A stretch of 64,000 nt of DNA from positions 1 through 64,000 of the IMG/VR virus record IMGVR_UViG_3300047095_000752; one strand, 5' to 3'. The stretch's first letter is position 1. The number at the start of each line of letters is the position of its first letter. Positions 10,822 to 62,906 of this stretch are shown one piece after another. The notes beneath the pieces are model-generated. The model had not been told where the DNA came from, made no database searches, and was given only the letters and a program-made list of their open reading frames with translations. Both the position numbers and the translations under genes were made by a program.

Positions 10822-10845
10822 AGAATCAAAAATACTATATATATT

Positions 10846-11619: not shown

Positions 11620-11650
11620 AAAAAATGGGGGACCGAAATCCCCCATAAAA
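11620..11650 (-). terminator. Rho-independent terminator
   Basis: aaaaaa-tggggga-ccgaaa-tcccca type hairpin just after the stop of the 11652 ORF. Confidence 0.65.
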
Positions 11651-11651
11651 C

Positions 11652-11837
11652 TTACTTCTTGGCGCTGTGTTTGGGGCAGTAGTACAACTTACCCTCATTC
11701 GTCCACCCAGCCGGTGCCGCCTTCAGGAACGCCGCCTGTTCCGACGCCGCCCTCCCCGACTTTTGTCCGCATTTCTTATTGGACTTTGGATCTCGGTGGG
11801 AACAGTTGATTGCTACTTTCTTTGCGGTTACTGCCAT
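11652..11837 (-). CDS. Small basic zinc-finger protein
   Basis: C..(10)..C ... GW ... CPKH; AGGAG RBS; followed by a terminator. Confidence 0.7.
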   Translation of the reverse strand: MAVTAKKVAINCSHRDPKSNKKCGQKSGRAASEQAAFLKAAPAGWTNEGKLYYCPKHSAKK

Positions 11838-11883
11838 TTTTATTCTCCTTGTTAATGTAAATCCACATAATGTGGGTGCAGGG

Positions 11884-12408
11884 TCAATGTTCCTTGTACA
11901 GTATTTTCAACTTATTTATATTCTTCAGCGGGACATCCACCCCACGCGAAGTCTTCGTAGACCCAATCTGCTCGTCCTCTACACTCATGATCAAGTCCTT
12001 CAAGGTCTTCGAAGAAATTTGACCATGATACAGGGATATTTTCTTGGGTTTGGATTTGCTGATGAATTTCTTCATTTTGGTTGCTGTGTTCAATATATAT
12101 TTGTAGAGATACAAGCAGGGTAGCCTTTCCGATTGTATCATCCGGTAGTGGTTCGAGAAGATGCTAGACTTCGATACCGAATCGACTATATTCCCAAGGG
12201 AATCGCCTCTTGGTATAATGTTGTTTATAATCTTTAGTTGATTGTCAACATATTCGACGAGACTTTTATTCGAAGTCTTATCCCGGTTATTCACAATGAG
12301 ATTAACCGTTAGCTTCGGGTCGTTATGAAGGAGTTGATTTAGTATGAAGAATTTCGGATTCCCAGCAAACTTGATAAATAACACATCCAACTTAGCAACT
12401 GTGTTCAA
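11884..12408 (-). CDS. Hypothetical protein
   Basis: 174 aa ORF with a GAGGAG RBS. Confidence 0.6.
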   Translation of the reverse strand: MNTVAKLDVLFIKFAGNPKFFILNQLLHNDPKLTVNLIVNNRDKTSNKSLVEYVDNQLKIINNIIPRGDSLGNIVDSVSKSSIFSNHYRMIQSERLPCLYLYKYILNTATKMKKFISKSKPKKISLYHGQISSKTLKDLIMSVEDEQIGSTKTSRGVDVPLKNINKLKILYKEH

Positions 12409-32198: not shown

Positions 32199-32210
32199 AT
32201 TTTAAATCCT

Positions 32211-35200: not shown

Positions 35201-36752
35201 CTTTGGTGTCTTTTAATTTACCTTCTCTTAAACTACGGGCAAGCATTGAACCACCCTTGAGAGCACCCGCACCCATTACCAAACCACCAAGTGGTCCGGG
35301 TCCCATAGTCATAGCTTTCAGACCAAGTTTACCAGCGCCCATCATCATACTAAGTGGGCTAACGCCCATCATTGCACCCAATGGACCACCAGACAGTAAA
35401 CTACCGGCAGCGCCCGCCGCCATCTTACCCGCACCTAAAATAGTCATCGGGTCAACACCAAGAGCTAATGCGGCAAGGAGTCCGATTCCACCCATCTTAG
35501 CACCTTTACCAACGGCGGATTTAATTGGTGAAAAAAGTTCACCAGTTGTCTTCATTCTACGACCGGGTGGCTGTTTAGATTTACCACCTCCCCCGCCACG
35601 GCCATTTCTTTTTAGTAAATCTAAAATACCAGCATTTCTAACATCATCCTCAGACGAAAATCCAATAATATTTGAAAGTAAAGCCTTCGCCCCCGTATAT
35701 GGGGATTTGGCTATCGTTTTAAGCTTACCCGCAATAAATTCGGAAGCGGCCGTAACGTCAGTCGGTGGTTTTATTTTAAGTTTAGTCCCCAGTCCGGTTT
35801 GCGTTACTCTGATAAGATCGTACATCAATCTATTTGTTTCACTAGACGTAGCACGACCTGCTGTATAAATCATACCAAGGGTAGTATTCATAGCGGCAAA
35901 TACACCAACCTTTTTAGGATTAGGTAGCTGAGATGAATAACGACCTGCGTTAAATACACGCATTGCTGGGATGATAAGGTTTACTGCAGTTTCCCCAAAG
36001 AATCTTAGCGTACTATTTGTAAATCGCGTTGAAAATTTCTTTTCTTCATTATGTTCTAACTTAGCGGCAATACTTTTAGATAAGTGAGTTATAAATGAAA
36101 GATCTTTTTTACTCAATTGATCCTTAGACCCACCATAACGAGCACTATCATTTAAACTGTTCTTATTAACCGAACTTGCAAATTCAGTATTTCCAGAATA
36201 ACCACCACTACGGATAAGTGAATTACTGGAGGACGATCTACGACCATTACCTTTATGGCTTATAGTCTTCTCTGTATATTCAATAGTTTGCTTTTTACCA
36301 GAACGTCTTACTCTTGCTCTACGCTTTACAGTACCCGCATCATCGGATTTAAATATTTCTTCAATCTCTTCAATCCCATCACCAATTCCGCGCATCCCCT
36401 TACCGTCAGATTGAGCATTTGATACATCATAACCACCACCCATTGAATAAGGACTCATACCACCCTTAATACCACTGAGTTTATTACCAACAGCCCCTGC
36501 CGCCTTACCCAACAGAGGTTTTAAGAACATTGAACCTAAAGGACCGCCTAAAAGTAACGAGGCGGCATCTCTGTGGGACTTTACTAATTCCGGGGAATCC
36601 TCACCAAGCGCAAAGTTATAAGCACCTCGCCCAGCACCCATAGCAGCACGACCCGCCATAGCAGGTGCCGCTTGCATTCTATTAATAATCGAATTTCGTC
36701 TGGATGAAGTTGAAGAAATCTCTCCACTACCGTACATTGCCTTGGGATCCAT
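32211..36752 (-). CDS. Tape-measure-like tail protein with a lytic transglycosylase (SLT) domain
   Basis: 1513 aa, G/A-rich with hydrophobic segments; AIIKAESNFNPNAKSPAGAVGLMQLMP...ALASYNAG...ETEKYV. Confidence 0.85.
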   Translation of the reverse strand: MDPKAMYGSGEISSTSSRRNSIINRMQAAPAMAGRAAMGAGRGAYNFALGEDSPELVKSHRDAASLLLGGPLGSMFLKPLLGKAAGAVGNKLSGIKGGMSPYSMGGGYDVSNAQSDGKGMRGIGDGIEEIEEIFKSDDAGTVKRRARVRRSGKKQTIEYTEKTISHKGNGRRSSSSNSLIRSGGYSGNTEFASSVNKNSLNDSARYGGSKDQLSKKDLSFITHLSKSIAAKLEHNEEKKFSTRFTNSTLRFFGETAVNLIIPAMRVFNAGRYSSQLPNPKKVGVFAAMNTTLGMIYTAGRATSSETNRLMYDLIRVTQTGLGTKLKIKPPTDVTAASEFIAGKLKTIAKSPYTGAKALLSNIIGFSSEDDVRNAGILDLLKRNGRGGGGGKSKQPPGRRMKTTGELFSPIKSAVGKGAKMGGIGLLAALALGVDPMTILGAGKMAAGAAGSLLSGGPLGAMMGVSPLSMMMGAGKLGLKAMTMGPGPLGGLVMGAGALKGGSMLARSLREGKLKDTKAGKWYQQSKLGSIHNSLSGFRKKYMMTDDDDGSTGGGGGSRKTTMGDCCEPTVEKLTEILNQLKMNTGRDDKYQDRKVSLMEKMVQELIISNTRDKKHQNEIIDITVKSRKTERLTYDMDKEALMIQKKEAKEASWWRKWDYFTDAMGGLAGVAIPALQTGIQVISDTVQTGVTAITGLMGKTLGGLGALLGLKMLTKGAAKNIVQSGGFMGFMRKQRSFKGGLDAMKGFGSRIGSSAKGMFGGLRDMAGNVGNRQTMGRTTFYPKAANAFGLMGDEVMAAEGKSIAQRAAAHPGTSAHGILSSIGDDVTGAIPDQSWGQFAKGLGKGFMSKAGGLASGMAKATPGVVGKMGGAAMSGATKVVGGATGALMSAGGLAYDIYSGKDMGESATTAGLALAGGASGGAIGAALGSVFPIVGTAIGGIIGSVVGALGSVLLDSFYGKQLTSTIAFYVDEMGLAIRENFTGMMTGIEGIWLSVWEGITAGVNKMDFMFAGLFDCIIGVIPMIASGILMMIDKTPELVRDYIPGLTDFRSIVEALAGGAGAPAQSFTAAASDRAYSRVAEDSKARGAWSKKKEDNVKYYEDQRTALGEMREMDYTKDGFKEKATEATIESAPAPPPATGFMGTVGSYGTKAYDWATGAAASGAEMYNQAAGGYTGAGGGAIFDQAPDNLKPLIEKYSKLNGLDPNVVAAIIKAESNFNPNAKSPAGAVGLMQLMPGTGKDVNVQPHERTDPEKAIMGGTAYFAKVLAMRNGNLPLALASYNAGPYNKTIQAGQIPQNGETEKYVAKIMGWLGGSTSTARSAGISAHNAVTTAKQIGAETAVKASNAAGMVSDAVKGIDVAAATETAMGGMETIGTSIKSATSGITSMDTLKSELKEKILAVPGLQEKMEKASGMSIDDLISSQEVTSKLGSLMTSNGVSNSVAGMAGKMGDGMDNLGNQIGSIVSNVAQMSTSVSKSASSIAANTANAADAKDAGLGDLPASLQDLLFGQFD

Positions 36753-45265: not shown

Positions 45266-47140
45266 TTATGCTTTCGTTTTACTTATGTTTACCGTAAAGG
45301 TCGGGTACGGAATATCAACTTGGAACTTATCGCTCCGCCCATTGATGCACCATATTGTTTCCATATGTTTAAAGAACTCGTAGTTACCGCAGAGTTCTTC
45401 AACATCGGATTCATAGTCGGTAAAGAACATCACAGTGCTGAGAATATTGTTTTCAAACAAATCTTGAATTTGCTCAAACACTTCTCGGTGTGATGTGCCG
45501 CCGCGCCCTTTTATATTTTTTATCTTTTGAAAGATTTCGTCTTTTGACGTTGCTTCTTCAATTATGATAGTGTCCACAACTACATAGTCATGAACAAATA
45601 CATATATTTTATCGTACTTACCATGAGAATCACATATGATAGAAACTGCAGTATTCAAATCTTCGTCGGGCATTGAACCCGATGAGTCAATGGCTACACA
45701 TAACAATTCGGGGACCAATCGAGTTGGTGTACCCGGAATTGCTATATTCATTTCTTGCATTAAGTGACCCATGTATTTATTGTATGTCGCGAATGATTTT
45801 TCTTCTGATTTTTGAGTCTTGGTGGCAATGGCATTCTTCAGAAGATAATCCCAAGGATACTTCACTTCGAAGAACTTATCGAATAACGTTCCACCCTCAC
45901 CACCGCCAGTGCCTTTACTCAATACCGAAGATAAAGCTTGAGAGTAATTCTGATAGACGAAGGGTGCTTGCTCGCCTATCCCTTTACCACCGGATGAATT
46001 ATTACCCAAGTCATAAATCGATTCATAACTTTTATGTGATACTTTATCGTATACTTGAATGATGATTACCGTCAAAGTCGGCAGCGCATCCTCTGGGATT
46101 TCCTGAAGGTTTTGTTTGGTATCATCATATTCTTCTTCATCTTCGTCGGATTCGGTGTGAGCATCCGGATCTTCGGGTATATGTATCTTAGCATTTATGT
46201 CGGCTACTTTTGAATTTGTGATAAGTGAATCGATCATCGGATTTACATCATCGACATAATCCGGATCATTCTTATCGAAATCCGCAGCTTTATTAGATTT
46301 TGTGAATTTAGGATTTGAGGATTTTATATAATCATCATCAGTGATAGTAGCATCGTTTACGGCGGACTCAATGGCGTCAGACCCATCGAGTAGGAACTCC
46401 ATGTCGCCAGTTTCGATTGCCTTTTTCACTGCGTTCATTTCAATCGCTAATTTTTGACTAAAATCTTTTTGGGTCAGTATATCTTCAACCGTTATTGGTG
46501 GGGGTTGAAGTCCATTTTGTATGAACATTTGTGGTGGTAATAGTGGTATTTTAATTTTCTTTGCTGATATATCAAACTCATTATTAGTTTCAATTCTATA
46601 TGCTAGCGACTCTACAGATTCGAGAGTGTCTTTATCGTGATATCGGTCGATAAAGATTGACTCTTTTGGAAAATGCATTATGTTTGTCGATTTACTATTT
46701 TTATGAAGATCGTGTAATATACTGTTGACTGTATGATCCGCCGCTACGTTAAACACGAGTGCGGATTTCAAGTCTTCCGGTATTCTATCATTATGTCTGA
46801 ATATGTGGTGGATGATTTCATGTATGATTTTGAATAACAGTTTAAAGGCAAAGAACTCGTCGTTCAAGGCTTTTGGGTCTGCTATTATATTTAGGGTGTT
46901 ATCTTCTATGTATACCATACCCGAGACAAGTTCTTGGAGTTTGGTGGATATTTGTTTCATGTACGAGTTATCTACGAATACCAATTTTCGTTCGAGACCC
47001 ATATAGAAGTGTCCGAAGAACTTCAATTTGGATGCAGGATTTATCAATACAGCTTGGATTATCTCTAAATCTTCTTCATACTTTTTTACTAAATTCGAAG
47101 TAAGATCTAGACGTTCGAATTTCTCTAAATCGAATTTCAT
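45266..47140 (-). CDS. Metallopeptidase-like plus VWA domain protein (DUF2201-like)
   Basis: HEIIH..F.H..R, N.AAD..VN, DSSGSM, GRGGT and FFTD motifs. Confidence 0.85.
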   Translation of the reverse strand: MKFDLEKFERLDLTSNLVKKYEEDLEIIQAVLINPASKLKFFGHFYMGLERKLVFVDNSYMKQISTKLQELVSGMVYIEDNTLNIIADPKALNDEFFAFKLLFKIIHEIIHHIFRHNDRIPEDLKSALVFNVAADHTVNSILHDLHKNSKSTNIMHFPKESIFIDRYHDKDTLESVESLAYRIETNNEFDISAKKIKIPLLPPQMFIQNGLQPPPITVEDILTQKDFSQKLAIEMNAVKKAIETGDMEFLLDGSDAIESAVNDATITDDDYIKSSNPKFTKSNKAADFDKNDPDYVDDVNPMIDSLITNSKVADINAKIHIPEDPDAHTESDEDEEEYDDTKQNLQEIPEDALPTLTVIIIQVYDKVSHKSYESIYDLGNNSSGGKGIGEQAPFVYQNYSQALSSVLSKGTGGGEGGTLFDKFFEVKYPWDYLLKNAIATKTQKSEEKSFATYNKYMGHLMQEMNIAIPGTPTRLVPELLCVAIDSSGSMPDEDLNTAVSIICDSHGKYDKIYVFVHDYVVVDTIIIEEATSKDEIFQKIKNIKGRGGTSHREVFEQIQDLFENNILSTVMFFTDYESDVEELCGNYEFFKHMETIWCINGRSDKFQVDIPYPTFTVNISKTKA

Positions 47141-51247: not shown

Positions 51248-54200
51248 TCAGTCCTCTAATTCAAGTCCAATTGTTTTAAACATCGCATTCAGGAGGCTCA
51301 ATGTGCGGGGTTTATCCGGCGCATCGTTCTCAAGAAGGATCTCTTCGTTTTGAAGGATATCTGATAATACTCGGAGCTTCTTTCCGGGCGAATCCGAATG
51401 CGTCGTCAGAAATTCCTCAATTGTGATCTCAGCGCCCTGTGCGCACAATGCCCAGATTTCCATTTCGCCAAGTTTGTGCCCACCAGATAATTTCTTACCA
51501 CCAACCGGTTGGAGTGTTGTATTGACGTATGGTCCAACGGATCGACTGATAATTTTATCTTCACTGCGGTGGATCAGCTTCTGAAAATATATTGATCCAA
51601 CAGCAATTGGATTCTTAAAGCATTTTTTATCGTCTATATACAAGGACTGTTTATATTCAGATCCGGTTAACTTCATGATCTGATCCAATTGTTGTGGAGT
51701 TATGCTGTTAAATGGAGGCTGCACAATCTGTATATCATCCAGAGCTTCGCAGATATCCTTCTCATAGAGAATGTTTTGAAAACGTTTGTAGGTTGTAGCT
51801 GCATAAATCTTATCGTCTGAGTTATCAAACAATTCTAAAAACTTTTGTAACTTCTTGTTCGCTTTATCGGAAAGTTTTCCATTCTTGTGATGATCAGACA
51901 TAAGATAAGTTTTCATATTATACAAGGCTTCGGTGGAATGTAGCTCGTATAACTGCCCACAGTTCATGCGGCTGATAATACCAAGGGGATTCACAATGAT
52001 CTCAACGTGACGACCGTCCGCCAGTTGAGGCATCTGATCCTTTGGGATGATCTTGGATATAATTCCTTTTGCCCCATGCCTGTTCGATACTTTATCCCCA
52101 ACAGAGATCTTAGATTTATGGATCCCTTTTAGGATGATCTTGATCCCTTCGATGTTCTTGCCCTTCTCGCTGTATTTAGCCGATTTCTTTGGGGGCGGTG
52201 CGTCGCTTACATGTAACTTGGACAATTCATAAAAATCAAGAATATTATCAATCTTTTCATTACTCATATATTCGGACAGTTGCTTACGAATTTCATTTAA
52301 CCGACCATTCTGATTTTTGATCAAAGTTTTAATGAAATTATGGAACTGAGGAATTTGTTTGTTCCAAGTATTAGGGTAAAGTTCAATACTAGTTATTTCA
52401 CAATCAATCGGAATTACCATATTATTTGGTTCGGTATTTATACTTTCAATACCGTCATGTCCGATATGCTTTAATTTAGCGTAAATCTCACCCTTTTTTA
52501 GCTTATCTCCAACCGAAGGTAAAGGCTTATAAGAATCATCGAGTAAACTTAGAAGGATCTGACCACCTTCAATTTCAAATGATAATTCTACAGTGTGTAA
52601 CGATGTGTAACGATCCACCACATCTTCTGAAATGACGATACCATCCTCGTAATTATAACCTTCCCAGATCGCGACCGCTGTCGTCAGATTATGCCCCAAT
52701 GTCAAATCGCCATCTTTGAAAAATTTGGAAATAGCAATAACATCATCTTTCTCGAATTTATCACCAACTTGCAAATCAGAATACATATAATCAGCACTAT
52801 TCAAATACATTGGACGATATGACAGCTTAAAAATATCAATATTACCAGACTCGTATTTAATAACAATGAATTCGTGAGATTTATAGGCGACCTCACCATC
52901 TTCCTTGGCAATTTGCTTGAAAGATGTATATTCAAAATATTTATCTTCCCAACCAGTTTTGATGAATGGCTTCGTTGCATTTTCAAGTAAAATTGACTGT
53001 TTCATCTGACCTGATGCCATTTGAAGTCTGGTTTGATCGTTGTTACTTAAAAATGGAACTAAGGTTATAGGATGACTACAGACCATATCCAAATCAGACT
53101 CCGTCATGCGCCCAGTCTCATCAATTTTAGCGCCGGGACAGAAATTTAAAATAACACCACAACCATCTCGATCTGGGGTGTCAGCAGGGCAGAAGATCCC
53201 ATAATGTGATGGATCCAAGTTCTTTAGGTGGCTTGGAGTTTTGCTCTTAGTGAAACTTCCGGGTCCAATAATTGTACTCTGTGTTAATGCTGAGATTTCG
53301 CCAAGTGGATTATAAGGGAAATTATGGTGAATGATTGAACTTACATTACAAGAGTCGAGAAGTATAGTAGTCGGAATTTTGAACTTAACACGCTTATTAT
53401 CATTGAGGATACAGATCATATCAAATACAGATCGGATTAAATTATATAAGACATACTCGGAAAACCGAATTCTTTTATTTTCTAAGGATGTATCAGACTT
53501 TGTACCCTCACTCAGAGAATATAGTAACTCCAGAACTGGAGAATTGGTTTTCATGTATGATTTGGAGAATGTATCAATCTCAACTGAATTTGAGATCGCA
53601 AAAAGAATTGATCTTCCCTTCTTGAGATTATCTGTGATCGCCACATTACTAGTACGGTAAGCTCCGAGTAATTCGATCAGTTTGGATTCTTTATTACCCT
53701 TCCAGAGTGTATTACACCGAGCTACTAACTGCTCGATAGCGGGGTTCTCGTTTGGAAGAGAATCTACGAAGGTTTGAAATTCTTCTCGCTTATACATCGC
53801 ACAAATGATATTTTCAATAGGAATATCTTTATAAAATTTCATATGGTTGAGAAAGATCTTGACAAGAAACGAATCGTCTTTATCAATTCCAGCACGCATG
53901 GAGATTACATTATTCTTGAAATTAAGAATCGTTTTATTCCGAACCACACGGTGAATGACAGGTTCGTCGATTAGCTGGAATACAGGGACTTTTAGTAGAC
54001 CGCCAATATAAAAGAATTGATCTTGGAGGAGTTCTGGTACTTGGATCGTATATACATGTTCTTTTTTAATAGTTTTCTTTTGAGTCAATTCATTTACATG
54101 GATCTTTAAAGTACGATAAATGCTCTTTTTAATTTCTTCCTTGCGCTTGCGCTTATTCTTCGCCCATGTGATTTTTACGAATTTCCAATTTTCTAAGAGA

Positions 54201-54286
54201 TCAATGTTTTGGAATAATCCTCCGATTGCGCCCTTGACTCGATCATAGTCCCATTCGTAACTTCTCTGCTCAAATGTAGTTTTCAT
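51248..54286 (-). CDS. rpoB: Phage DNA-directed RNA polymerase beta subunit
   Basis: CPADTPD, GQMKQS, GYNYEDGI, GDKVSNRHGAKG, SRMNCGQ, KLIH and GGHKLGEME. Confidence 0.93.
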   Translation of the reverse strand: MKTTFEQRSYEWDYDRVKGAIGGLFQNIDLLENWKFVKITWAKNKRKRKEEIKKSIYRTLKIHVNELTQKKTIKKEHVYTIQVPELLQDQFFYIGGLLKVPVFQLIDEPVIHRVVRNKTILNFKNNVISMRAGIDKDDSFLVKIFLNHMKFYKDIPIENIICAMYKREEFQTFVDSLPNENPAIEQLVARCNTLWKGNKESKLIELLGAYRTSNVAITDNLKKGRSILFAISNSVEIDTFSKSYMKTNSPVLELLYSLSEGTKSDTSLENKRIRFSEYVLYNLIRSVFDMICILNDNKRVKFKIPTTILLDSCNVSSIIHHNFPYNPLGEISALTQSTIIGPGSFTKSKTPSHLKNLDPSHYGIFCPADTPDRDGCGVILNFCPGAKIDETGRMTESDLDMVCSHPITLVPFLSNNDQTRLQMASGQMKQSILLENATKPFIKTGWEDKYFEYTSFKQIAKEDGEVAYKSHEFIVIKYESGNIDIFKLSYRPMYLNSADYMYSDLQVGDKFEKDDVIAISKFFKDGDLTLGHNLTTAVAIWEGYNYEDGIVISEDVVDRYTSLHTVELSFEIEGGQILLSLLDDSYKPLPSVGDKLKKGEIYAKLKHIGHDGIESINTEPNNMVIPIDCEITSIELYPNTWNKQIPQFHNFIKTLIKNQNGRLNEIRKQLSEYMSNEKIDNILDFYELSKLHVSDAPPPKKSAKYSEKGKNIEGIKIILKGIHKSKISVGDKVSNRHGAKGIISKIIPKDQMPQLADGRHVEIIVNPLGIISRMNCGQLYELHSTEALYNMKTYLMSDHHKNGKLSDKANKKLQKFLELFDNSDDKIYAATTYKRFQNILYEKDICEALDDIQIVQPPFNSITPQQLDQIMKLTGSEYKQSLYIDDKKCFKNPIAVGSIYFQKLIHRSEDKIISRSVGPYVNTTLQPVGGKKLSGGHKLGEMEIWALCAQGAEITIEEFLTTHSDSPGKKLRVLSDILQNEEILLENDAPDKPRTLSLLNAMFKTIGLELED

Positions 54287-54325: not shown

Positions 54326-55270
54326 TCAAATAGTATGGTAAACTGTCAATTTTTCGTTGAACCAAGCCATGAATTCTTCTTGGATGTATTTTCCGCCTTT
54401 AGATCCATTTTCTTTTTGAGGTATTATTCTTAAGTTTTCCCGGAGGTTACATATTTCTTTAACAATTGTTTGCCCGTAGATATTATCAAGATCATTATCG
54501 ATAAAAGCTATTCTCGGATAAATATGATCTACCGTATAATCAGATTTATTCCATCGATTTCCCGTTGCCTTGGCTGTTTTTTGTGATTGGGTATAATCCG
54601 TGTATTTTGGATCATCCGATAAAATGTAAAGTTTTTTAAGATCAAACCTTAAATATCCAGCCCTAGCCAGACGTGTTCTATCTTGTTGGAATCTAAAATG
54701 GTTTTTACCGGTATTTTTTTTATATCCACATTCTCTACATCGTTGATCATTTTGAAAATTATTATATGTTATTAAACTTTCCTCCCCACACTCACATCTA
54801 TATTTCATTTTAGTATGATTATTAATGTACTTAGTTTCTAAAAGTTCACAACCTTCATTTTTAAAGATCTTATATACAGTTTCATATGTTAACTTTTCTT
54901 TACCCGAACATTTTCTACACCGTTGTTCCAAATGTTTAAAATTACTATATTCTATCACGCTTATGTTATCACATGAACATCTATACCTCATTTTAGTATG
55001 GGCATTTATATACTCTGTTTCTAGTAGTTCGCAGCCTTTGTCTTTAAAAGAATTGTAAACATCTTCAAATTTAAGTTTTTCAGATCCGCCACATTTAGCG
55101 CATCTTCGATTGTGACTTTTAAAATTATTAAATATTATTTCACTTTTATTACCACATGAACACTGATACCTCATTTTAGTTGCATTATTAATATATTCAG
55201 TTTCTAATAATTCGCAGCCTTGTTCTTTGAAATAATTATAAACAACATCATATGTTAATTTAACCGGCAT
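54326..55270 (-). mobile_element. Zn-repeat HNH endonuclease
   Basis: Paralogue of 50336-51244; three repeats plus YTVDHIYP...NLR...N..K. Confidence 0.75.
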
Positions 55271-55284: not shown

Positions 55285-57993
55285 TTAAAGTCTAAACAAT
55301 TTTGAAATAGCGCTCGGGGTGTCTGCACTGGAGCTTGTAACACCATCGAGTAATCGATTCTTTAGTCGGGCGAATGAAATACCCAATAACCATGATGAGA
55401 TCGATGGGATCTTCAAGATACTCTCAAATTTGTATGGAAAGTTATTTCGATTCGGGATCGTGCGCCACATCTTCTTGTCGGACCACATCATCGCGCTTGC
55501 AATCGTCTCGTAATGTACAAGCATTATATTTCCGTACTGACTAAAAATACTATTTAGAGCCAATACGAGATCAATTGGTTCATTCACTTCCTTCAAATCG
55601 GTCGGCTTGTGAAATAACTTATTTACAAGACTCATTCCAGAAATAATATCTTGGTTCTGGTTATTTTCACCAGATCCTTGCGCAACTCCAGAGGTGTGAA
55701 ATGAGCGCAATACTAACTGCGTGATACGTTCACCGATACACTGGGTAGCAACAATGCCAATCTGAGTGCTGTGTAGGATGTTCGACACATTCCCATAACA
55801 CTTCTTGCAAATGTGTTTACTCTTACAATAAATGGGGCTGCGAAGTTGAATTTTACGTCCAATCAGAGCTTTATAATTATCACGAGTTATTAAGAATAAA
55901 GACCCATCCTTACCGACGATATAGCGCCAAATTAAAGTTCTGGCCAAAGCTTCGCTTTTACTATCGTCAATTCGACCAGTCTTATCACGAACAATGACCT
56001 CCAAATTCATGTATTCCGTAGTTTTGCAGTCGTCCACATCTCCCAGTTCCATATTTACGGTACTGTAGATCAATTGGCGGGTGATATAGCCACTGCTTGA
56101 AGTTGAGAGTGCCGTGTCGAGCAGACCCTTACGAGTACCCCAAGCACTGTTGAAATAATCTTTCTGCTTCATACCACGTACAAGACTTGCACGAATGAGA
56201 TCTGGACGAAGCTTGTTAGTCACGTCCGCTACGTACCCACGAGCCACTGTAAGCTGTAGAAGCTGGTCCATCGACCCACGAGCACCAGACTCAGTGAAAA
56301 TGTAATATGGCTTCTTCTTGATCTTAGCGTGAATCTTTTTATTGGTGGATATTTTTAACATATCTTTTTGGATATCACCAGTAAGTGAGTCTGAAAATGC
56401 ATCGAACTCTGGATCATGAAGATCATCAATCGAAAGAGTGTAACCGTATTTTGTCGAAAGTCGAAACCCGAGTTCTTTAACTGCATCTAAAACTTTCATG
56501 CTGACCAATGGACTATACTTAAGAACAATATCATTCAAAATAGTTTTTAGAAGTTTATTGTCAACTGTCTCATTAATAACATGATAATCTTCGGGTAAAC
56601 ATTGATTGAAAAGGAGTCTTTCCTTTGACATGACGACGTTCTTATATTCATATCTTTTATTGGTGTTATTTTTTGTAGCAGTGTAGATCACTAAAATAAG
56701 GTCCTGATTTGGCTTTGGAACGATCTCGCCATCGGCAGGAGATAAAAGATTATTCCAAATTCCGATCTTTTCATTAATATCTTTGGCGCATCGGTCGGTT
56801 ACAGCTATATAAATAGCCATCTGATCGCCGTCAAAATCTGCGTTATAAGCTCCGCAAATAAGGGGGTGAATCATGATAGTATTGCCGGGGTTAATCTTAA
56901 TATGAAATGCCAGTACAGACATTCGGTGGAGTGTCGGTTGGCGATTTAATATGCATACTCGATTCTTAACGAAGTCTTCTAAATAAGTCATTAATTGTGT
57001 GTCATTTTCAACAATACATTTATCAATTAATTCTGAAGCCTTATTATGTCTATTCACAACCTTCCGGTTTACAAGATAAGTAATAAGTTTTGGTTTAAAC
57101 ATTTCAAGCAAGATTAAATATGGGATCCGACATTCATCCAAATGTAATGTCGGATCCGGGCTAATTACCGCGCGACCGGAGAAGTCCACGCGCTTACCAA
57201 GGATATTTCCTCGAATGAGTCCATTCTTCTTGCTTAGCTTATCCATAATATATTCATAAATTTCAATAGCATGGGTTTGAATAGCTCTAAAATATATAAT
57301 ATGAATATCACTATTTTCTTTTATTTCAAAGTTCATATCCCGAATTCGAGATGTTCTCATTAATAACTCTCTATAATTTCGGTTTAAAGCATCGGTTGTA
57401 TAACTACCATTATTATTTTTATTTATATTTCTAAATGCTGGAGGCATAACAATAACATTATTGCAAATCATTATGTCTTCATTATCAGTTATGAATTTAA
57501 GTTCTGGCTTTTCAGAATCTTTACATAGATAAAGTATGTATGATTTTGTACCTTCGACCCCGACCAACTTTTTGGCTGGATCGTCAACATTAGGATCGAA
57601 TTCCACCAGTTCCGCTTCATCATTAAAAATATATTCAACTTTATAAAACAACATATTATAAAGGACTTTTTTAATTCCGGGCTTAGCCTTGAGGATAATC
57701 ATATAAATCAAAGGATTTAGGATAGGAAAAGGTAGTGCAATCTTAGCGTAACGCTTCGCTCGCTCTTCTGAGGACGTTATCTCGACGTTACATACTTTAC
57801 ATACATCCTCGTCACCATGAGGTCCACGGTATATGGATCTTGAACATCCACACTTATAGGATCGAAGTGGACCAAAAATCTGTTGGGAGAACAGACCTGC
57901 GGGTGTAAGCTTACAATTTTCATCGATCTTATCCGCTGTAATTTCTGGTAAATCTTGTGTAAATTCATCGATATTGAAGTGTTTTAGTTTCAC
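55285..57993 (-). CDS. rpoC: Phage DNA-directed RNA polymerase beta-prime subunit
   Basis: GLFSQQIFG, zinc finger, GKRVDFSGRAVI, NRQPTLH, catalytic NADFDGD, SGARG and TQLVLRSFH. Confidence 0.95.
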   Translation of the reverse strand: MKLKHFNIDEFTQDLPEITADKIDENCKLTPAGLFSQQIFGPLRSYKCGCSRSIYRGPHGDEDVCKVCNVEITSSEERAKRYAKIALPFPILNPLIYMIILKAKPGIKKVLYNMLFYKVEYIFNDEAELVEFDPNVDDPAKKLVGVEGTKSYILYLCKDSEKPELKFITDNEDIMICNNVIVMPPAFRNINKNNNGSYTTDALNRNYRELLMRTSRIRDMNFEIKENSDIHIIYFRAIQTHAIEIYEYIMDKLSKKNGLIRGNILGKRVDFSGRAVISPDPTLHLDECRIPYLILLEMFKPKLITYLVNRKVVNRHNKASELIDKCIVENDTQLMTYLEDFVKNRVCILNRQPTLHRMSVLAFHIKINPGNTIMIHPLICGAYNADFDGDQMAIYIAVTDRCAKDINEKIGIWNNLLSPADGEIVPKPNQDLILVIYTATKNNTNKRYEYKNVVMSKERLLFNQCLPEDYHVINETVDNKLLKTILNDIVLKYSPLVSMKVLDAVKELGFRLSTKYGYTLSIDDLHDPEFDAFSDSLTGDIQKDMLKISTNKKIHAKIKKKPYYIFTESGARGSMDQLLQLTVARGYVADVTNKLRPDLIRASLVRGMKQKDYFNSAWGTRKGLLDTALSTSSSGYITRQLIYSTVNMELGDVDDCKTTEYMNLEVIVRDKTGRIDDSKSEALARTLIWRYIVGKDGSLFLITRDNYKALIGRKIQLRSPIYCKSKHICKKCYGNVSNILHSTQIGIVATQCIGERITQLVLRSFHTSGVAQGSGENNQNQDIISGMSLVNKLFHKPTDLKEVNEPIDLVLALNSIFSQYGNIMLVHYETIASAMMWSDKKMWRTIPNRNNFPYKFESILKIPSISSWLLGISFARLKNRLLDGVTSSSADTPSAISKLFRL

Positions 57994-58053: not shown

Positions 58054-58776
58054 CTATATCAAAACATACTTGTCATCGACTTTAAATGGTATCTTAGATG
58101 TACAATCTATAACTTCATGTTTATTAGCTTTTATTACGATATTATTGGTGTAACTAGAGATGCTATCCCATTTACCTAATGTTGGTGCTGGAATTTCATT
58201 TGAAATTATTGCTGTATACGAATCTGTTAATACAGGCTTTGCTTTAACATATACAAATTCTTTAAACAAATCATACATTTTACACATTTCATTCGAATCA
58301 TCATAAACTAAAATATATTCTCTAACATTGAAATGTGATTTATAAACTAATCTTACAGAGTAATCACTAAATATTAGATTATATCTTTCTTTCATATATA
58401 ATCTACTATTTATAAAATCGTGTATAATATTACTTGTGCCCCCTAATATGACATATGAACTAATTTTTTTAGGAGAATATTGTGTGGCACTTATATGAGC
58501 ATTGTGTTCTCTGTCCAAATCTATAAAACAATTGAAGAAATATTTTTTAGGGTATGACATATTGTGTCTTAGTTTATTAGAGGGATTGGTCTTTCTCCCC
58601 ACTGAAGTAAACATATAATGATTTTCAAAAAATATATAACTGGATATGTAAAGTTTAGGGTACACGTCTTTTATATGTTGGTTATTGTTATTTATAAATA
58701 TTGAGTACGATAACATTTGTATATTGTACATAGCCTTTGATATTAAACGACCATTCATAAAATCTGAGACTTGCAT
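58054..58776 (-). CDS. Hypothetical protein
   Basis: 240 aa ORF with a GAGGAGG RBS. Confidence 0.6.
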   Translation of the reverse strand: MQVSDFMNGRLISKAMYNIQMLSYSIFINNNNQHIKDVYPKLYISSYIFFENHYMFTSVGRKTNPSNKLRHNMSYPKKYFFNCFIDLDREHNAHISATQYSPKKISSYVILGGTSNIIHDFINSRLYMKERYNLIFSDYSVRLVYKSHFNVREYILVYDDSNEMCKMYDLFKEFVYVKAKPVLTDSYTAIISNEIPAPTLGKWDSISSYTNNIVIKANKHEVIDCTSKIPFKVDDKYVLI

Positions 58777-58781
58777 TATAG

Positions 58782-59417
58782 CTACGAGACCTCCTCACCG
58801 TTTATAAACATATTTGAATAACTAGACGAATCCCACCATTTCATATCAAATAACTTTATTTCTTTATATTTTTTAATATATTTTGTTGTACTTTTCATAT
58901 TTTTTGATGTAAATATATGTTCATGTATTCTATTTTTCGAAAAATGAATTCCATAATACAACGAACCTCCATTTGATTTTACTAATTTATTTTTTTGAGG
59001 CGGAGTATTATCATTCGAATGTGTTGTATATTCACAATTAAATTCAGCATATGTTTTAATTTTAACATTTTTAATATTAGACTTTCTAATATCTATTTTA
59101 CAAAAATGAGGACCTTTATAATTATTATCGTACATCATGGTCGAAAATAGGTAGTCACTCATATCGTAACTATGTAAACCACAGTATAAAGAATAAAATC
59201 TTAACTTTATATTCAAATCTCTAACAAATGAATGCGAAAGAATTCGGTTTAACACAATCGATTTACTTTTATGTTCACCCTTAACGTATATATGTTCAAT
59301 ATAATATTTAATTGAAGGTTTTACTATCCGATTGGATATCCTATCAAAAAATCTATATAAAGCAAGTATTGTATTATCTAATTCCCATATCGTATCTTCG
59401 TTAGTTGGAAGTTGCAT
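58782..59417 (-). CDS. Hypothetical protein
   Basis: 211 aa ORF overlapping the upstream stop. Confidence 0.55.
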   Translation of the reverse strand: MQLPTNEDTIWELDNTILALYRFFDRISNRIVKPSIKYYIEHIYVKGEHKSKSIVLNRILSHSFVRDLNIKLRFYSLYCGLHSYDMSDYLFSTMMYDNNYKGPHFCKIDIRKSNIKNVKIKTYAEFNCEYTTHSNDNTPPQKNKLVKSNGGSLYYGIHFSKNRIHEHIFTSKNMKSTTKYIKKYKEIKLFDMKWWDSSSYSNMFINGEEVS

Positions 59418-60189
59418 TTAAAAGCGCCTTCAGTGATGGGTCCAGTTTATAATAATTCGTTAAATTGTATATCTTCATAGTTTCTATGACATCTTCAATT
59501 ATTTGCGAATCTATTTTTTTATGTATAAAATTCCCTATACAGTATTTATTGTTTTCATAATTTATATTTGGGTGTATGTTTTTATTTGTAAATGCTTTTA
59601 CCTCAACTAATAGATTCGAGCTATTTGTAGTAAATCTTATCTCACCCACCATAGTCCTTAATTTGACGGGTAGCCGTTTTATCATTCCAGATTCTGACTT
59701 GTACAAGTCGCATTCTATCTTATTATGTATTGTTATATTATTCCTATCAAATATAACTAAATCGTACTTGTATGAAAGTTCTTCGTTAAATGTATTATTT
59801 ACCGTTATGTTTAAAACATAATATAGATGTGTTAATATATTTCTTTTTTCGGGAATACTTATATTAATCTTACTAAACATATCTTTATAATTGTAACAAA
59901 ACTCGTCCAGTGTAGTTATCTCATTTAAAAGACTTGGGGTTATTATGATATGTTTGTTTTCTGATTTGTAAAAGATATAAAAAAAATACAAGTTATTTAA
60001 AACAATAGGGGTGATACTATATTCTTTAATTTCGGATAATATTTGATTTAAGTGTATTGTTTTATATTCGTATATTTCAATATTATGTTCTTTTTTTACA
60101 CAAATTTTATTACAGTTAAATTTATTTAAAAACGCCTTTACATTCAAGTTATTTTGTTTTGGTCTAAATAAGTTCAATAAGTTAATCAT
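59401..60189 (-). CDS. Protein with a C-terminal prokaryotic E2/UBC-like motif
   Basis: IHPNINYENNKYCIG...YN resembles the UBC HPN(x7-8)C signature. Confidence 0.45.
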   Translation of the reverse strand: MINLLNLFRPKQNNLNVKAFLNKFNCNKICVKKEHNIEIYEYKTIHLNQILSEIKEYSITPIVLNNLYFFYIFYKSENKHIIITPSLLNEITTLDEFCYNYKDMFSKINISIPEKRNILTHLYYVLNITVNNTFNEELSYKYDLVIFDRNNITIHNKIECDLYKSESGMIKRLPVKLRTMVGEIRFTTNSSNLLVEVKAFTNKNIHPNINYENNKYCIGNFIHKKIDSQIIEDVIETMKIYNLTNYYKLDPSLKALLNATSN

Positions 60190-60293
60190 AAAATACCTCG
60201 CTGTTGATTAACTTGATTAGAGTCAGTTAACTTTTCCTTATAGATCAAATACTAATCAGATCCATCCTAAATTATATCAATTATCTCAATTAC

Positions 60294-60323
60294 TCCCCTA
60301 CCCCCATATAAGGGGGTAGGGGA
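60294..60323. other. Perfect 12-bp GC-rich hairpin without a U-tract
   Basis: tcccctaccccc-atataa-gggggtagggga. Confidence 0.6.
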
Positions 60324-60331
60324 TATAATAT

Positions 60332-60625
60332 TTAAGCTGAAATTACAATAGGAGTTATATAAATTTTAATTATAGATTCATCTTTACATACCTCATATAA
60401 TAAGGTATAGTCTAAATTATTAGTACAATATCTTTTCAATTTATTATAGAAATTTGACGGTTTAATTTTGATATAATCTTCACCACCAACTACGAATAAA
60501 TAAATTTCAAATGTTGGGTAAGTTGAAAAATACAATTCTGCTTCATTGGTGTTATGAATTTTAATGTTTGTAGTAGGATTCAATATAATATGCTCTTCCG
60601 TATTCAATACAGATTGCTTACTCAT
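60332..60625 (-). CDS. Small hypothetical protein coupled to the ThiF-like gene
   Basis: 97 aa, ATGA overlap. Confidence 0.55.
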   Translation of the reverse strand: MSKQSVLNTEEHIILNPTTNIKIHNTNEAELYFSTYPTFEIYLFVVGGEDYIKIKPSNFYNKLKRYCTNNLDYTLLYEVCKDESIIKIYITPIVISA

Positions 60626-61179
60626 AGGCTGGACATCAGATGATTTAACACAATCTGAGTTTCTTTTCCTTTAACTATAGGAAATTTTATACTAATAATA
60701 TCCTCTATTACATAGGATACGGTTAGTAATGAATAGTAATCTGAATTCTTAATGGAATAACTATGAGGTTCATTCAAGTCATTATTTTTAGGAAATTTTA
60801 TTATATGACCATATGGACCGTCTGACGATATCTTCATATAAAATATATCCGACTGATTTTTATTATCCCTACAATCTATATATACCGTGTTGTTAATTTC
60901 ATTATTGGAGTAATCTTTTAAAAATTCTGGGAATTTATTATTAACCGGTCGTAATCCAAGGAGAGGATTTATCTGATATAACTCATCCTCTAAATGATAT
61001 GATTTAGGATATCCAATTTTATTGTGACCGTCTTCCGTAATTACGTCAGGATCTATAAACTCTAATAATTCAAATTTACATTTGGTTTCTAAACTTCTAG
61101 ATGCAAATAGACGTAATAGAGCAGATCCCACAGTCCCACATCCAACTACACTAAGTTTTTTCATTTGCGCATCCAACAA
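60622..61179 (-). CDS. Minimal ThiF/E1-like adenylation-domain protein
   Basis: VVGCGTVGS, FIDPD.I, IGYPK...L...INP and IDCRDN. Confidence 0.7.
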   Translation of the reverse strand: MLDAQMKKLSVVGCGTVGSALLRLFASRSLETKCKFELLEFIDPDVITEDGHNKIGYPKSYHLEDELYQINPLLGLRPVNNKFPEFLKDYSNNEINNTVYIDCRDNKNQSDIFYMKISSDGPYGHIIKFPKNNDLNEPHSYSIKNSDYYSLLTVSYVIEDIISIKFPIVKGKETQIVLNHLMSSL

Positions 61180-61199: not shown

Positions 61200-62507
61200 T
61201 TAGACTGTTTGAAGTTTTTTGGAATTATAGGCGATAAGGGATTTCGCGATGATCTTACCCGTTACTTGGGTTAGACCACTATGTTCAGCCGCAGTATAAT
61301 TGTCGTTAAGAATTCCGGAGAGGCAGAGAAGATTGTAGTACAGGTTGTTGTATGATTCCGGGAAGTTTTCAAGGATATCATCAAACTTGTTACGATTTTC
61401 TTTGCACATTTTGGACTTGATCTTTTTGATATCACTTTCGGTCAGCTTATATTCTTTCATTGCATGTACAGACTTGATAACTTTTTCTTCTTCGATGCGA
61501 TGGATAGAGTCCTTGATGTCGGCGATTTGAAGACCCTTGTGGATATACTTTGTGGCGAATTGATTGATGGTAAAGAAGTCGCGAATAGACTTATCACCCT
61601 GTTTGAAATGGAAGTTAAAGCTGATATGGAAGGAATTCTTGCCGTCATATGAATTTGAGATACACATTTCAATTACGGTCTTATTTGCGCTGAATACTTC
61701 TTCGGATTTGAATCCGGATACAATGTAGAATAGATCTTTCTGGACTTGAGATTCAATTGTGCGGAGGGTCTTTTCAGTCTCAGCAATCCATTCGATAACG
61801 AAGGGTGATATTTTCAGGTCGATCTGGTCGATTGACATTTCAGACTGGATTTTCTTGATAAGATCGTCCATGTGAATGACAACATAATTGTGGGATAGGA
61901 GGGTATTTGAGGTATGGTAGGTGTCAGATCCCGGTACACGGCTATGGGTGGAATAATAATTACTGGGGTTACCGCTTGGGTCCAGAATCTGCTTATATGT
62001 GACTTCAAGCTTATCGAATTCGTTGAATGAATATTCGTTATTTGAATGTTCCACGTTGCGGAGCTTGCTGGCGAAGTCCGGGAGCGTGGCGAGATTACGC
62101 TGCACTTTCTCCCGTGGTGGAGCCTTGGGCTTGGCGGTTGTGTTTGCGTTTGTAGAACCCTTGGGACGACCGCGACCACGCTTCACCGTAACAACAGGGG
62201 CTTCATGTTGCACTGTTGGTGAAGTGATGGGTTGTGTGGGTTCGGGATCTGATGTGTCGGAATTAATATTGAAGATACCGAGAGCTTTGCTATATTCGAC
62301 ATCGTCGTCGTCTTCTTCTTCGATGTCTTCATCTTCATCTTCGTCAATATCTTCGTCGGGTTCGTATGATATAATCGTGCGGGGTTCAAGAAATGGGTTC
62401 GTATTGTCTTCGACACTATCAAAATTGAATGCGTCGTTGATGTTTGAAATAAGTGAATCGGTATCATTAACTTGGTCTACGTGTTCTGACATGAAAGTCA
62501 ACTCCAA
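61200..62507 (-). CDS. Acidic N-terminus, AT-hook and DUF932-like domain protein
   Basis: Poly-D/E tract, KRGRGRPKGS AT-hook and SNSYDG motif. Confidence 0.55.
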   Translation of the reverse strand: MELTFMSEHVDQVNDTDSLISNINDAFNFDSVEDNTNPFLEPRTIISYEPDEDIDEDEDEDIEEEDDDDVEYSKALGIFNINSDTSDPEPTQPITSPTVQHEAPVVTVKRGRGRPKGSTNANTTAKPKAPPREKVQRNLATLPDFASKLRNVEHSNNEYSFNEFDKLEVTYKQILDPSGNPSNYYSTHSRVPGSDTYHTSNTLLSHNYVVIHMDDLIKKIQSEMSIDQIDLKISPFVIEWIAETEKTLRTIESQVQKDLFYIVSGFKSEEVFSANKTVIEMCISNSYDGKNSFHISFNFHFKQGDKSIRDFFTINQFATKYIHKGLQIADIKDSIHRIEEEKVIKSVHAMKEYKLTESDIKKIKSKMCKENRNKFDDILENFPESYNNLYYNLLCLSGILNDNYTAAEHSGLTQVTGKIIAKSLIAYNSKKLQTV

Positions 62508-62513: not shown

Positions 62514-62906
62514 TTACGAGAATGGCTTAATGTTTGGTGAGAAGTGTTTCTTGGCGTGTAGTTCAAACGATTCAAACTTCGCCTTTGCGATATTACTTAG
62601 ATCTCTTATGCTGTCTATGTCATTTAATTCATCACTTACAAATATAATAATTTCATCTGGAATTAATTTTTGTACTTTTAATACAGCTTTACGGTATGAG
62701 TATGGATTTGGTTTAAATACCTTCCCGCCCGTATATATTTTCACTGGATATATCCCGTGTTTAAAGCACCACCACATTATTTTAAACCGTGAGAATATAG
62801 TCCTATTGGTCACCAAATAATAGTCTATATCGTACTCGTACAATATATTATTTTTTGGATCGAAATTCTTTTGCAATGTTTCGAACGATAGTATTATATT
62901 CTTCAT
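62514..62906 (-). CDS. Hypothetical protein (possibly a degenerate HAD-like fold)
   Basis: 130 aa; KPNP...IIFVSD..NDI resembles the C-terminal half of HAD proteins. Confidence 0.45.
   Translation of the reverse strand: MKNIILSFETLQKNFDPKNNILYEYDIDYYLVTNRTIFSRFKIMWWCFKHGIYPVKIYTGGKVFKPNPYSYRKAVLKVQKLIPDEIIIFVSDELNDIDSIRDLSNIAKAKFESFELHAKKHFSPNIKPFS

Follow-up and report, generated by a model that had tools for sequence, protein, structure and literature searches.

Ubiquitin-like protein conjugation in prokaryotes has so far been described in bacteria, either as a weapon of the host against phages (type II CBASS Cap2, Bil) or as a presumed one (Bub; PMC11601596, PMC13276650), but not in phages. 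In the Bil system (BilABCD), the E1 protein BilD has an IAD-AAD-CYS architecture and a JAB peptidase is present, whereas Cap2 of the type II CBASS Cap2/Cap3 systems is an E2-E1 fusion that conjugates the CD-NTase itself; in these systems the E2 is thought to select targets without an E3. The Bub operons (bacterial ubiquitination-like, "6E/DUF6527"; Ye et al., PMC11601596) comprise a homodimer-type E1 with a single adenylation domain and no catalytic cysteine in the crossover loop, a separate small modifier and a UBC-fold E2, but work through oxyesters (E1 Tyr, E2 Ser/His), have E1-JAB or E2-E1 fusions and include a DUF6527 serine protease. The MoeB-MoaD and ThiF-ThiS sulfur-carrier pairs have a single-domain E1 core, with insertion of the C-terminal tail of the small partner into the nucleotide pocket; they are characterized by Gly-Gly termini, the SNLxRQ arginine loop, zinc CxxC motifs and sulfurtransferase partners and have no UBC-fold protein.

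The locus analyzed here is located in a 64,000-nucleotide stretch of DNA (the window; positions 1 to 64,000 of IMG/VR record IMGVR_UViG_3300047095_000752) from the 245-kb contig (78% complete) of an uncultured freshwater jumbo phage. On the minus strand, an E1/ThiF-like gene (60622-61179), a 97-aa ORF (60332-60625), a GC-rich hairpin (60294-60323) and a gene for a 262-aa protein with an HPN-x8-C signature (59401-60189) precede the genes for RNA polymerase beta' (55285-57993; 902 aa, NADFDGD motif) and beta (51248-54286). A preliminary description, based on the sequence alone, had reported these features, and its observation was confirmed in all respects. Its interpretation as a phage-side conjugation system or, alternatively, a mimic that intercepts host E1/E2 defense was only partly supported, as detailed below. 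The genes are real: relative to the 83%-identical relative L002, dN/dS was 0.07 for the E1 gene, 0.12 for the 97-aa ORF and 0.25 for the 262-aa ORF, indicating purifying selection on all three, although dS was near saturation.

The E1-like ORF runs from a TTG at 61179 (185 aa); as its homologs start at the internal ATG (M6, position 61164), the protein probably comprises 180 aa. It consists of a single ThiF/E1-type adenylation domain with the motifs GCGTVG, DPD, IGYPK and DCRDN. The single window sequence scored below the Pfam cut-off for ThiF (PF00899; E 0.004, 16.7 versus 28.1 bits), but a family profile matched the active adenylation domain of UBA6 at E 4.5e-8, MoeB (1jw9) at 1.1e-3 and Cap2 at 0.014; the nearest clusters in the protein atlas were short viral ThiF proteins (score 0.94), and such mini-ThiF clusters of phages hold hundreds of members there. 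Residues G8, C9, G10, G13, D38, D40, K54, D97-C98-R99-D100, D115, G116 and G119 were invariant; among these, K54 and the Mg/ATP-binding D97-C98-R99-D100 were invariant in 14 sequences and aligned with the corresponding UBA6/MoeB positions. In contrast, the SNLxRQ loop following the DxD motif is deleted relative to UBA6/MoeB in the clade of the window sequence (a gap of 8-12 residues), while distant orthologs keep ..KNLP[FY] but lack the Arg. There are no CxxC zinc motifs and no catalytic-Cys domain; the only cysteines are C9 (GCG) and C98 (DCRD), with none after residue 98. The chemistry of this E1 may therefore differ from the classical scheme.

The 97-aa ORF overlaps the stop codon of the E1 gene by 4 nt (ATGA) and is translationally coupled to it. 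The preliminary description had noted this ORF but stated that no ubiquitin-like modifier (Ubl) with a C-terminal Gly was visible; this caveat was wrong in substance, since the 97-aa protein is itself the likely modifier. All 11 orthologs (20-90% identity) end in P-[IL]-[VI]-x-S-[AG], with Ser-Ala in 10 of them and Ser-Gly in one distant ortholog; the tail as a whole is invariant and, in the window protein (TPIVISA-COOH), ends exactly at the stop codon. The terminus is thus not the Gly(-Gly) of ubiquitin-like modifiers. In a predicted 2:2 complex with the E1, tail residues 91-97 were placed in the nucleotide pocket and A97 contacted the GCGxxG and DCRD motifs (E1 residues 10-13 and 98-99). The prediction scored 0.85 against 0.00 for the best control, a mark that was reached by 58 of 80 solved complexes and 2 of 110 mismatched pairs; three runs agreed in at least 90% of contacts and the pLDDT of the partner was 86-88. 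However, this score may reflect resemblance to the solved MoeB-MoaD and ThiF-ThiS complexes, and it relied on alignments prepared for this analysis. The AF2 model of the 97-aa protein alone had a pLDDT of only 63.5 and a b-b-a-b-b-a-b-b topology; its weak fold matches were enriched in beta-grasp domains (glutamine synthetase N-domain, SUMO2, ISG15, PB1, DIX, protein L), but at Z 3-4 and Foldseek E above 0.1 none was significant, and no beta-grasp fold is claimed. PHROGs, NCBIfam and PADLOC searches gave no match for this protein.

The resemblance of the mini-E1 to the single-domain, Cys-less MoeB/ThiF type could also point to a sulfur-carrier system of the ThiS/ThiF, MoaD/MoeB or TtuB/TtuC type, in which the adenylated small protein would become a C-terminal thiocarboxylate donating sulfur for a nucleotide, DNA or cofactor modification, and the cysteine of the 262-aa protein would serve as a persulfide relay. 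Indeed, the two most distant loci (L008 and L010) carry a PP-loop/GATase enzyme (QueC E 2.5e-25, tRNA_Me_trans 2.8e-6) next to the mini-E1. In the phage investigated, however, no rhodanese, cysteine desulfurase (Aminotran_5), QueC/PP-loop or MoaE-type gene was found within the 245 kb of the incomplete contig, although a host enzyme cannot be excluded; the terminus is not Gly-Gly, and the partner protein has a predicted UBC fold with an HPN motif, which is typical of aminolysis and not of sulfur relay. This alternative is considered unlikely.

The modifier and E2-like genes are separated by a 151-nt spacer that folds with z = -3.0 against shuffled sequences. The hairpin just after the modifier gene comprises 12 bp with 9 G-C pairs; a hairpin is present at the same place in 5 relatives, each with a different sequence. 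A classic intrinsic terminator was considered, but no U-tract follows on the coding strand; a transcript-end or RNA-stability element is probable. Immediately after the hairpin lies the conserved tandem motif TTGAGATAATTGATATAA (60272-60289, minus strand; the TTGAGATA motif), a candidate promoter or operator for the E2-like gene; its core TTGAGAT was invariant in all 6 aligned spacers, and the double motif occurs only twice in the 245-kb genome. The modifier and the E2-like protein may therefore be expressed separately. A search for RNA evidence returned only a single 192-nt contig, about 94% identical to the E1 5' part, from a wastewater RNA library, which is not evidence of transcription of this phage.

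The 262-aa protein was modeled confidently (AF2 pLDDT 85.7). It comprises an N-terminal alpha/beta domain (about residues 15-87), a helical linker and a C-terminal domain with a predicted UBC fold (about residues 130-259; pLDDT 95-98 in residues 140-260) that contains H206-P207-N208 and C217. In a structural comparison with VIA-align, the top 25 of 48,161 PDB representatives (unbiased search) and the top 50 of a second look were all E2/UBC proteins, with Z 6.0-7.9 over 110-125 aligned residues; Z values below 8 can, however, reflect a common arrangement. The best matches were the eukaryotic E2 enzymes UbcH8/UBE2L6, UbcH7, UBE2S and UbcH5 (Z 6.9-7.9 over 110-120 residues), at a sequence identity of about 10-15%; the BubCD-BubB-BubA structure 9eav_D was also among the matches (Z 6.1). 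Foldseek with the whole two-domain model gave only scattered sub-threshold hits in PDB, BFVD and the protein atlas, and in AFDB clusters the best matches (E 8.5e-6 and 6.9e-4) were uncharacterized proteins; only the Foldseek-independent aligner resolved the UBC domain. H206, N208 and C217 were invariant, and P207 was present in at least 90%, among 42 diverged relatives (16-63% identity); a profile aligned the HPN..C motif with the UbcH5 active site at E 0.06 (HPNINSNGSICLD in UbcH5 versus HPNINYENNKYCIGN in the phage protein). In contrast to the eukaryotic E2 enzymes, the phage protein has an extra N-terminal region of ~130 residues and matches no UQ_con or Prok-E2 HMM: none of the 42 members hit an E2 family in Pfam, PF14460 gave no hit in the genome at E up to 10, PHROGs gave nothing for the window protein, and NCBIfam and PADLOC were likewise without an E2 match; only a language-model lead pointed to Prok-E2_D clusters (score 0.85). 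The nucleotidyltransferase-like shape of the N-terminal domain was considered as a second catalytic activity, but this was rejected because no residue there is conserved across the family.

The order E1-modifier-E2-RNAP beta' was kept in all 11 distinct phage loci examined, with the E1 and modifier genes overlapping or at most 18 nt apart and the module immediately upstream of the beta' gene, or within 1-3 genes of it, in every relative. The three findings named in advance as able to refute the initial interpretation, i.e. lack of a UBC fold, a non-conserved cysteine and unlinked genes in relatives, were thus not observed, the first on the basis of the structural model. In the window, two lineage-specific ORFs of 211 and 240 aa (58054-59417, minus strand; dN/dS 0.51 and 0.30) are inserted between the E2-like and the beta' genes; they are shared only with the closest relative and are probably not part of the module. 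Upstream of the mini-E1 lies a conserved gene for a 435-aa protein (61200-62507, minus strand) with an acidic, disordered N-terminus, an RGRGRPK AT-hook-like motif and a conserved ~290-aa C-terminal domain; the protein has no Pfam or PDB match. Its orthologs lie directly upstream of the mini-E1 in every one of the nine loci whose DNA or gene list reaches that position, whereas L008 and L010 have a Gat-QueC-type gene there instead; it could be a partner or target, but this is unproven. A conserved 130-aa protein (62514-62906, minus strand) is encoded between SbcC and the 435-aa gene; profiles of both neighbors gave no informative PDB match. As stated in the preliminary description, a JAB peptidase is absent here: searches with PF14464 and PF01398, tblastn with the JAB proteins of the relatives and a JAMM-motif scan found nothing in the 78% complete contig. 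L008 and L010, however, carry a JAMM/JAB peptidase nearby, completing the classical E1/E2/Ubl/JAB gene set. Searches of cultured-phage databases (blastn and tblastn with the region, the E1, the E2-like protein and distant orthologs) gave no match, and scans of IMG/VR and JGI metagenome contigs with E1 and E2 alignments found pattern hits but no relatives. That these are unrelated neighboring genes with fortuitous motif resemblances might be inferred from the absence of curated family hits above threshold for the window proteins; this reading is already disfavored by the synteny over deep divergence, the profile and structural matches, the invariant motifs and the docking prediction, and is regarded as a remote possibility.

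The explanation considered best, held with moderate confidence as somewhat more likely than not, is a self-contained, minimal conjugation cascade of the ubiquitin type. In this view, the 180-aa E1-like protein, probably a homodimer as in MoeB, ThiF, UBA5 and BubCD, would bind the modifier and use ATP to adenylate the carboxylate of Ala97; as the E1 lacks a cysteine in a crossover loop or inserted domain, the acyl-adenylate would most likely be attacked directly by Cys217 of the UBC-fold protein, giving an E2~modifier thioester. The HPN asparagine would then assist transfer to an amine, most likely a lysine, of a target protein, which the non-catalytic N-terminal domain of the E2-like protein may select. 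No processing peptidase would be needed, because the modifier is translated already ending at its reactive residue. While the folds, motifs, conservation, linkage and predicted E1-modifier docking rest on the computational results, adenylation, thioester formation, ATP-dependent conjugation and the nature of the target, which could be a phage or a host protein, are inferences, and the adjacency to the RNA polymerase genes is only a hint. With Bub, the phage module shares a single adenylation-domain E1 of the homodimer type without a catalytic cysteine in the crossover loop, a separate small candidate modifier and a predicted UBC-fold E2; with Bil and Cap2, it shares the proposed E1 + E2 + modifier logic; and with MoeB-MoaD and ThiF-ThiS, a single-domain E1 of similar core and the insertion, here predicted, of the small partner's C-terminal tail into the nucleotide pocket. 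Compared with Bub, the phage E2-like protein keeps the eukaryote-like HPN and Cys, the genes are unfused, and no peptidase is present; compared with Bil and Cap2, the E1 is a 180-aa protein without a Cys domain, no JAB was found and the modifier ends in Ser-Ala; in both comparisons the system is encoded on the phage side.

Since ThiF-like enzymes perform diverse carboxylate activations (PMC12596934), the Cys-less E1 might alternatively activate the terminal Ala for amidation, cyclization or nucleotidylation of the small protein, as in the MccB, PaaA or RiPP ThiF-like type, with the UBC-fold protein being a non-catalytic scaffold or having an unrelated function. The hairpin and the separate regulatory motif that split the E2-like gene from the E1-modifier pair would be compatible with this reading; however, the E2-like gene co-occurs with the pair in all 11 loci, its H/N/C triad is invariant in 42 relatives, and the substrate would be a folded protein of ~80-108 aa rather than a short peptide, so that this alternative also appears improbable. 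The decoy or mimic proposed in the preliminary description, by which the phage proteins would bind host E1/E2/Ubl defense components (type II CBASS Cap2, Bil, Bub) and block them without catalysis, could draw on the action of host Ubl systems against phages (PMC11601596, PMC13276650) and on the weak similarity of the mini-E1 to the E1 part of Cap2 (PADLOC E 0.0027; 1.4e-8 for the L008 ortholog). It is not supported: the nucleotide- and Mg-binding residues of the E1, the HPN/Cys of the E2-like protein and a cognate modifier with a predicted productive docking are all conserved under purifying selection, which a mimic would not need and which points to an active enzyme system. This reading is therefore judged very unlikely, although an active system could still be aimed at host defense proteins.

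A more far-reaching, tentative reading, considered somewhat less likely than not, is that a lineage of uncultured jumbo phages encodes its own complete conjugation system, consisting of a Cys-less E1, a ready-made ~100-aa modifier ending in Ser-Ala and an E2 that fuses a target-binding domain to a UBC core, which runs without an E3 or a peptidase and would be used to tag phage or host proteins during takeover, possibly the multisubunit RNA polymerase of the phage itself or host defense factors, given the invariant position next to the RNAP genes. This would be the first E1-E2-modifier cascade on the phage side of the phage-bacterium conflict, and the smallest one known. The family is confined to uncultured freshwater and metagenomic phages and matches no curated E2 or Ubl model, so that ordinary annotation does not see it; the three proteins are small and should be easy to reconstitute. 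The locus would also define a very small E1 (180 aa, no catalytic Cys, no arginine loop) and a modifier with a non-glycine terminus, both of which test current ideas about the minimal requirements for Ubl activation and E1-to-E2 hand-off. A phage-encoded cascade would show that viruses of bacteria use the same chemistry as their hosts, as many eukaryotic viruses do.

The window, the first 64 kb of a 245-kb IMG/VR virus contig estimated to be 78% complete, is AT-rich (about 35% G+C), and the same sequence is present in many lake-water metagenomes. Local G+C rises to 0.43-0.44 against a background of about 0.34 at positions 10001-12000 and 32001-36000, the second patch lying within the gene of a 1513-aa SLT-domain protein. 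The first 64 kb encode, besides this protein, unsplit multisubunit RNA polymerase beta' (902 aa) and beta (1012 aa), SbcCD and a T4-type terminase; a 314-aa protein with a CapR homology domain (E 1.5e-9; 54326-55270, minus strand) is positioned between the RNAP beta' and beta genes, and a 624-aa protein with DUF2201 VWA-like and putative metallopeptidase domains is encoded at 45266-47140 (minus strand). In comparison with 50,697 deposited phage records, the RNAP beta' was at most 27% identical to any entry, and the region of interest had neither a DNA nor a protein match; in consequence, the contig is regarded as that of an uncultured, deeply divergent jumbo phage.

All features listed in the preliminary description were confirmed on the minus strand: a ThiF-type ORF at 60622-61179 carrying GCGTVG, DPD, IGYPK and DCRDN, a 97-aa ORF at 60332-60625 whose start codon overlaps the preceding stop (ATGA), a 12-bp hairpin with 9 G-C pairs at 60294-60323, and a 262-aa ORF at 59401-60189 with HPN (residues 206-208) and C217. 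Homologues of the ThiF-type ORF begin at its sixth codon, so that the real protein probably comprises 180 aa and starts at 61164. In comparison with the nearest relative (locus L002), dN/dS values of 0.07, 0.12 and 0.25 were obtained for the ThiF-type, 97-aa and 262-aa genes, respectively; the three genes are therefore coding and under constraint, although dS is near saturation. A 192-nt contig from a wastewater RNA-seq library matched the 5' part of the ThiF-type gene (60989-61171) with 11 differences and thus originates from a relative; it is not evidence of transcription, since DNA carry-over is possible.

The single ThiF-type sequence reached only E 0.004 on Pfam ThiF, which is below the cut-off, whereas a profile of 14 orthologues matched the active adenylation domain of human UBA6 (E 4.5e-8), MoeB (1.1e-3), a TcdA-type dehydratase (1.3e-3) and Cap2 (0.014). 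A more canonical orthologue from the distant locus L008 matched the E1 part of CBASS Cap2 models at 1.4e-8, and the neighbours in a protein language-model comparison were short (180-215 aa) viral ThiF clusters (score 0.94). The invariant residues include the GCGxxG loop, D38/D40, K54, D97-C98-R99-D100 and the DG.YG strand; in contrast, the SNLxRQ arginine loop is replaced by a deletion of 8-12 residues, and neither a cysteine after residue 98 nor a zinc motif is present. The protein (mini-E1) is therefore a bare adenylation domain, like MoeB, ThiF or the Cys-less E1 of Bub operons (PMC11601596).

The 97-aa protein has few sequence relatives; however, a small ORF is located at the same position in every related locus. 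These ORFs are only 20-90% identical to the 97-aa protein, yet all 11 end, exactly at the stop codon, in P-[IL]-[VI]-x-S-[AG] (e.g. TPIVISA, TPIVTSA, TPIVKSA, TPLVSSA, MPIVNSA, VPIIYSA and IPLVESG): a fixed extreme C-terminus with a small last residue is what an E1 substrate needs. A 2:2 complex prediction of the mini-E1 and the 97-aa protein gave a score of 0.85 (runs 0.84, 0.85, 0.85) against 0.00 for the best of three controls, a mark that was reached by 58 of 80 solved complexes and 2 of 110 mismatched pairs; the runs agreed in at least 90% of contacts, and the pLDDT of the partner was 86-88. According to the predicted complex, tail residues 91-97 run along E1 residues 112-120 and Ala97 touches G10-G13 and C98-R99, which places the carboxylate at the nucleotide site. 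It has to be considered that alignments compiled for this analysis were used and that the score may reflect likeness to solved MoeB-MoaD-type complexes. The AF2 model of the free protein has a pLDDT of only 63.5 and the topology b-b-a-b-b-a-b-b; its weak structural neighbours are enriched in beta-grasp domains, but none is significant. The protein is therefore referred to as a functional Ubl analogue (candidate modifier) and not as a proven Ubl.

For the 262-aa protein, an exhaustive profile search yielded 44 representative relatives; in an alignment of 42 of them (16-63% identity), H206, N208 and C217 were the only invariant residues, while P207, G219 and Y247 were at least 90% conserved (consensus HPNxDxNGxYCLG). 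No member matched any Pfam E2 family, and a PDB profile search aligned the motif to HPNINSNGSICLD of UbcH5 at E 0.06 only. The AF2 model based on the 42-sequence alignment has a pLDDT of 85.7, with values of 95-98 over residues 140-260. Whole-model Foldseek searches were confused by the two domains of the protein, whereas a Foldseek-independent scan of 48,161 PDB representatives returned E2/UBC enzymes as the top 25 matches, including the bacterial Bub complex 9eav (Z 6.0-7.2; 107-125 aligned residues, 99 for the Bub chain, over model residues about 130-259); a second-look alignment gave 50 of 50 E2s, with a Z of up to 7.9 for UbcH8. The Z values are modest, but the uniformity of the matches, the near-complete coverage of the UBC core and the motif together make a UBC fold the clear reading of the predicted structure. 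The N-terminal domain (59401-59850; residues ~15-130) has the shape of a Pol-beta/RelA-type nucleotidyltransferase palm (Z about 5 to TUTases, MenT, CapRel and Tas1), the resemblance involving the N-terminal ~90 residues of the protein, but it carries no conserved residues, catalytic ones included, and is taken to be a non-catalytic, possibly target-binding, domain.

In 11 distinct loci, with mini-E1 identities from 88% down to 25%, the genes are arranged in the order SbcC, a ~130-aa protein, a ~360-436-aa acidic/AT-hook protein, mini-E1, small modifier, E2-like protein and RNAP beta', with the restriction that the acidic/AT-hook protein lies upstream of the mini-E1 in nine of the eleven loci and is lacking in the two most distant ones (L008 and L010). 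In the phage investigated this protein comprises 435 aa (61200-62507, minus strand) and consists of a long acidic, disordered N-terminus, an RGRGRPK AT-hook-like motif and a conserved ~290-aa C-terminal domain with many invariant residues; no Pfam or PDB match was found. The mini-E1 and modifier genes overlap or lie at most 18 nt apart, and the phage and its closest relative contain two or three additional fast-evolving ORFs between the E2-like gene and RNAP beta'. In another relative (L014:7670-12222), the RNAP beta' gene is split into two ORFs (443 and 467 aa) that are separated by ~1.8 kb with small ORFs, which may be an intron, an intein or a homing-element insertion. The invariant co-occurrence of the E2-like gene with the mini-E1 and modifier genes, together with the invariant H/N/C triad, weakens the alternative of an adenylation-only tailoring enzyme with an unrelated E2-like neighbour.

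Immediately upstream of the mini-E1, L008 (1-3743) and L010 (597-4277) encode a larger ThiF protein (331-345 aa), a JAMM/JAB peptidase (HKHPGGxxSFSATD; Prok-JAB E 2.7e-4) and a GATase-QueC fusion (Gat-QueC-like; QueC E 2.5e-25). The classical E1/E2/Ubl/JAB association therefore exists in the wider lineage; the arrangement could represent a second E1/JAB system or a link between Ubl-type chemistry and 7-deazaguanine or PP-loop chemistry. In contrast, no JAB, second ThiF, QueC, rhodanese or cysteine desulfurase was detected in the 245-kb contig investigated. The absence of any sulfur-transfer gene from this contig (78% complete), in addition to the UBC/HPN partner, weakens the interpretation of the genes as a sulfur-carrier system.

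In the six closer relatives whose spacer DNA could be aligned (the phage investigated and L002, L004, L005, L006 and L012), the modifier gene is followed by a strong hairpin that differs in sequence from one relative to the next, and directly thereafter by a conserved tandem motif TTGAGATAnTTGAnATAA (hairpin and motif: 60272-60323, minus strand). The double motif occurs only twice in the 245-kb genome, the second copy being located near genome coordinate 163257 on the minus strand, and may be a specialised promoter or operator. The E2-like gene thus probably has its own regulation, while the modifier transcript may be stabilised or ended at the hairpin. The hairpin, which had been raised as a caveat because it separates the genes, is a conserved part of the module rather than a sign that the genes are unlinked.

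The preliminary interpretation as either a phage-side conjugation system or a mimic that intercepts host E1/E2 defence was only partly supported: The reading as a decoy of host defence enzymes is weakened by the conservation of all catalytic-type residues and of a cognate substrate. The most economical reading is an active minimal conjugation cascade, in which Ala97 would be adenylated by a dimeric mini-E1, the adenylate would be captured directly by Cys217 of the UBC-fold protein, since the E1 has no cysteine to form a first thioester, and the modifier would be transferred with the assistance of the HPN motif to an amine of a target chosen by the extra domain of the E2-like protein. In this view, no peptidase is needed because the modifier is made in mature form. 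Folds, motifs, linkage and docking are what the in silico analysis itself demonstrates, whereas the chemistry of the cascade is deduced from them and awaits biochemical proof; as to target and biological purpose, the constant position beside the RNA polymerase genes and the conserved AT-hook protein can be regarded as leads only.

Full-text literature searches revealed phage Ubl-JAB tail-assembly proteins (PMC1779556) and ThiF homologues in Asgard viruses and archaeal elements, but no description of a bacteriophage-encoded E1-modifier-E2 set, although prior description elsewhere cannot be excluded as the literature searched was incomplete. According to the proposed mechanism, the module works like the bacterial Bil, Bub and CBASS-Cap2 systems and like eukaryotic E1-E2 cascades, but it is not a member of any of those families: It lacks the E1 architecture and the JAB of Bil, the fusion of Cap2, the oxyester residues and the DUF6527 protease of Bub, and the Gly-Gly terminus and arginine loop of the sulfur carriers.
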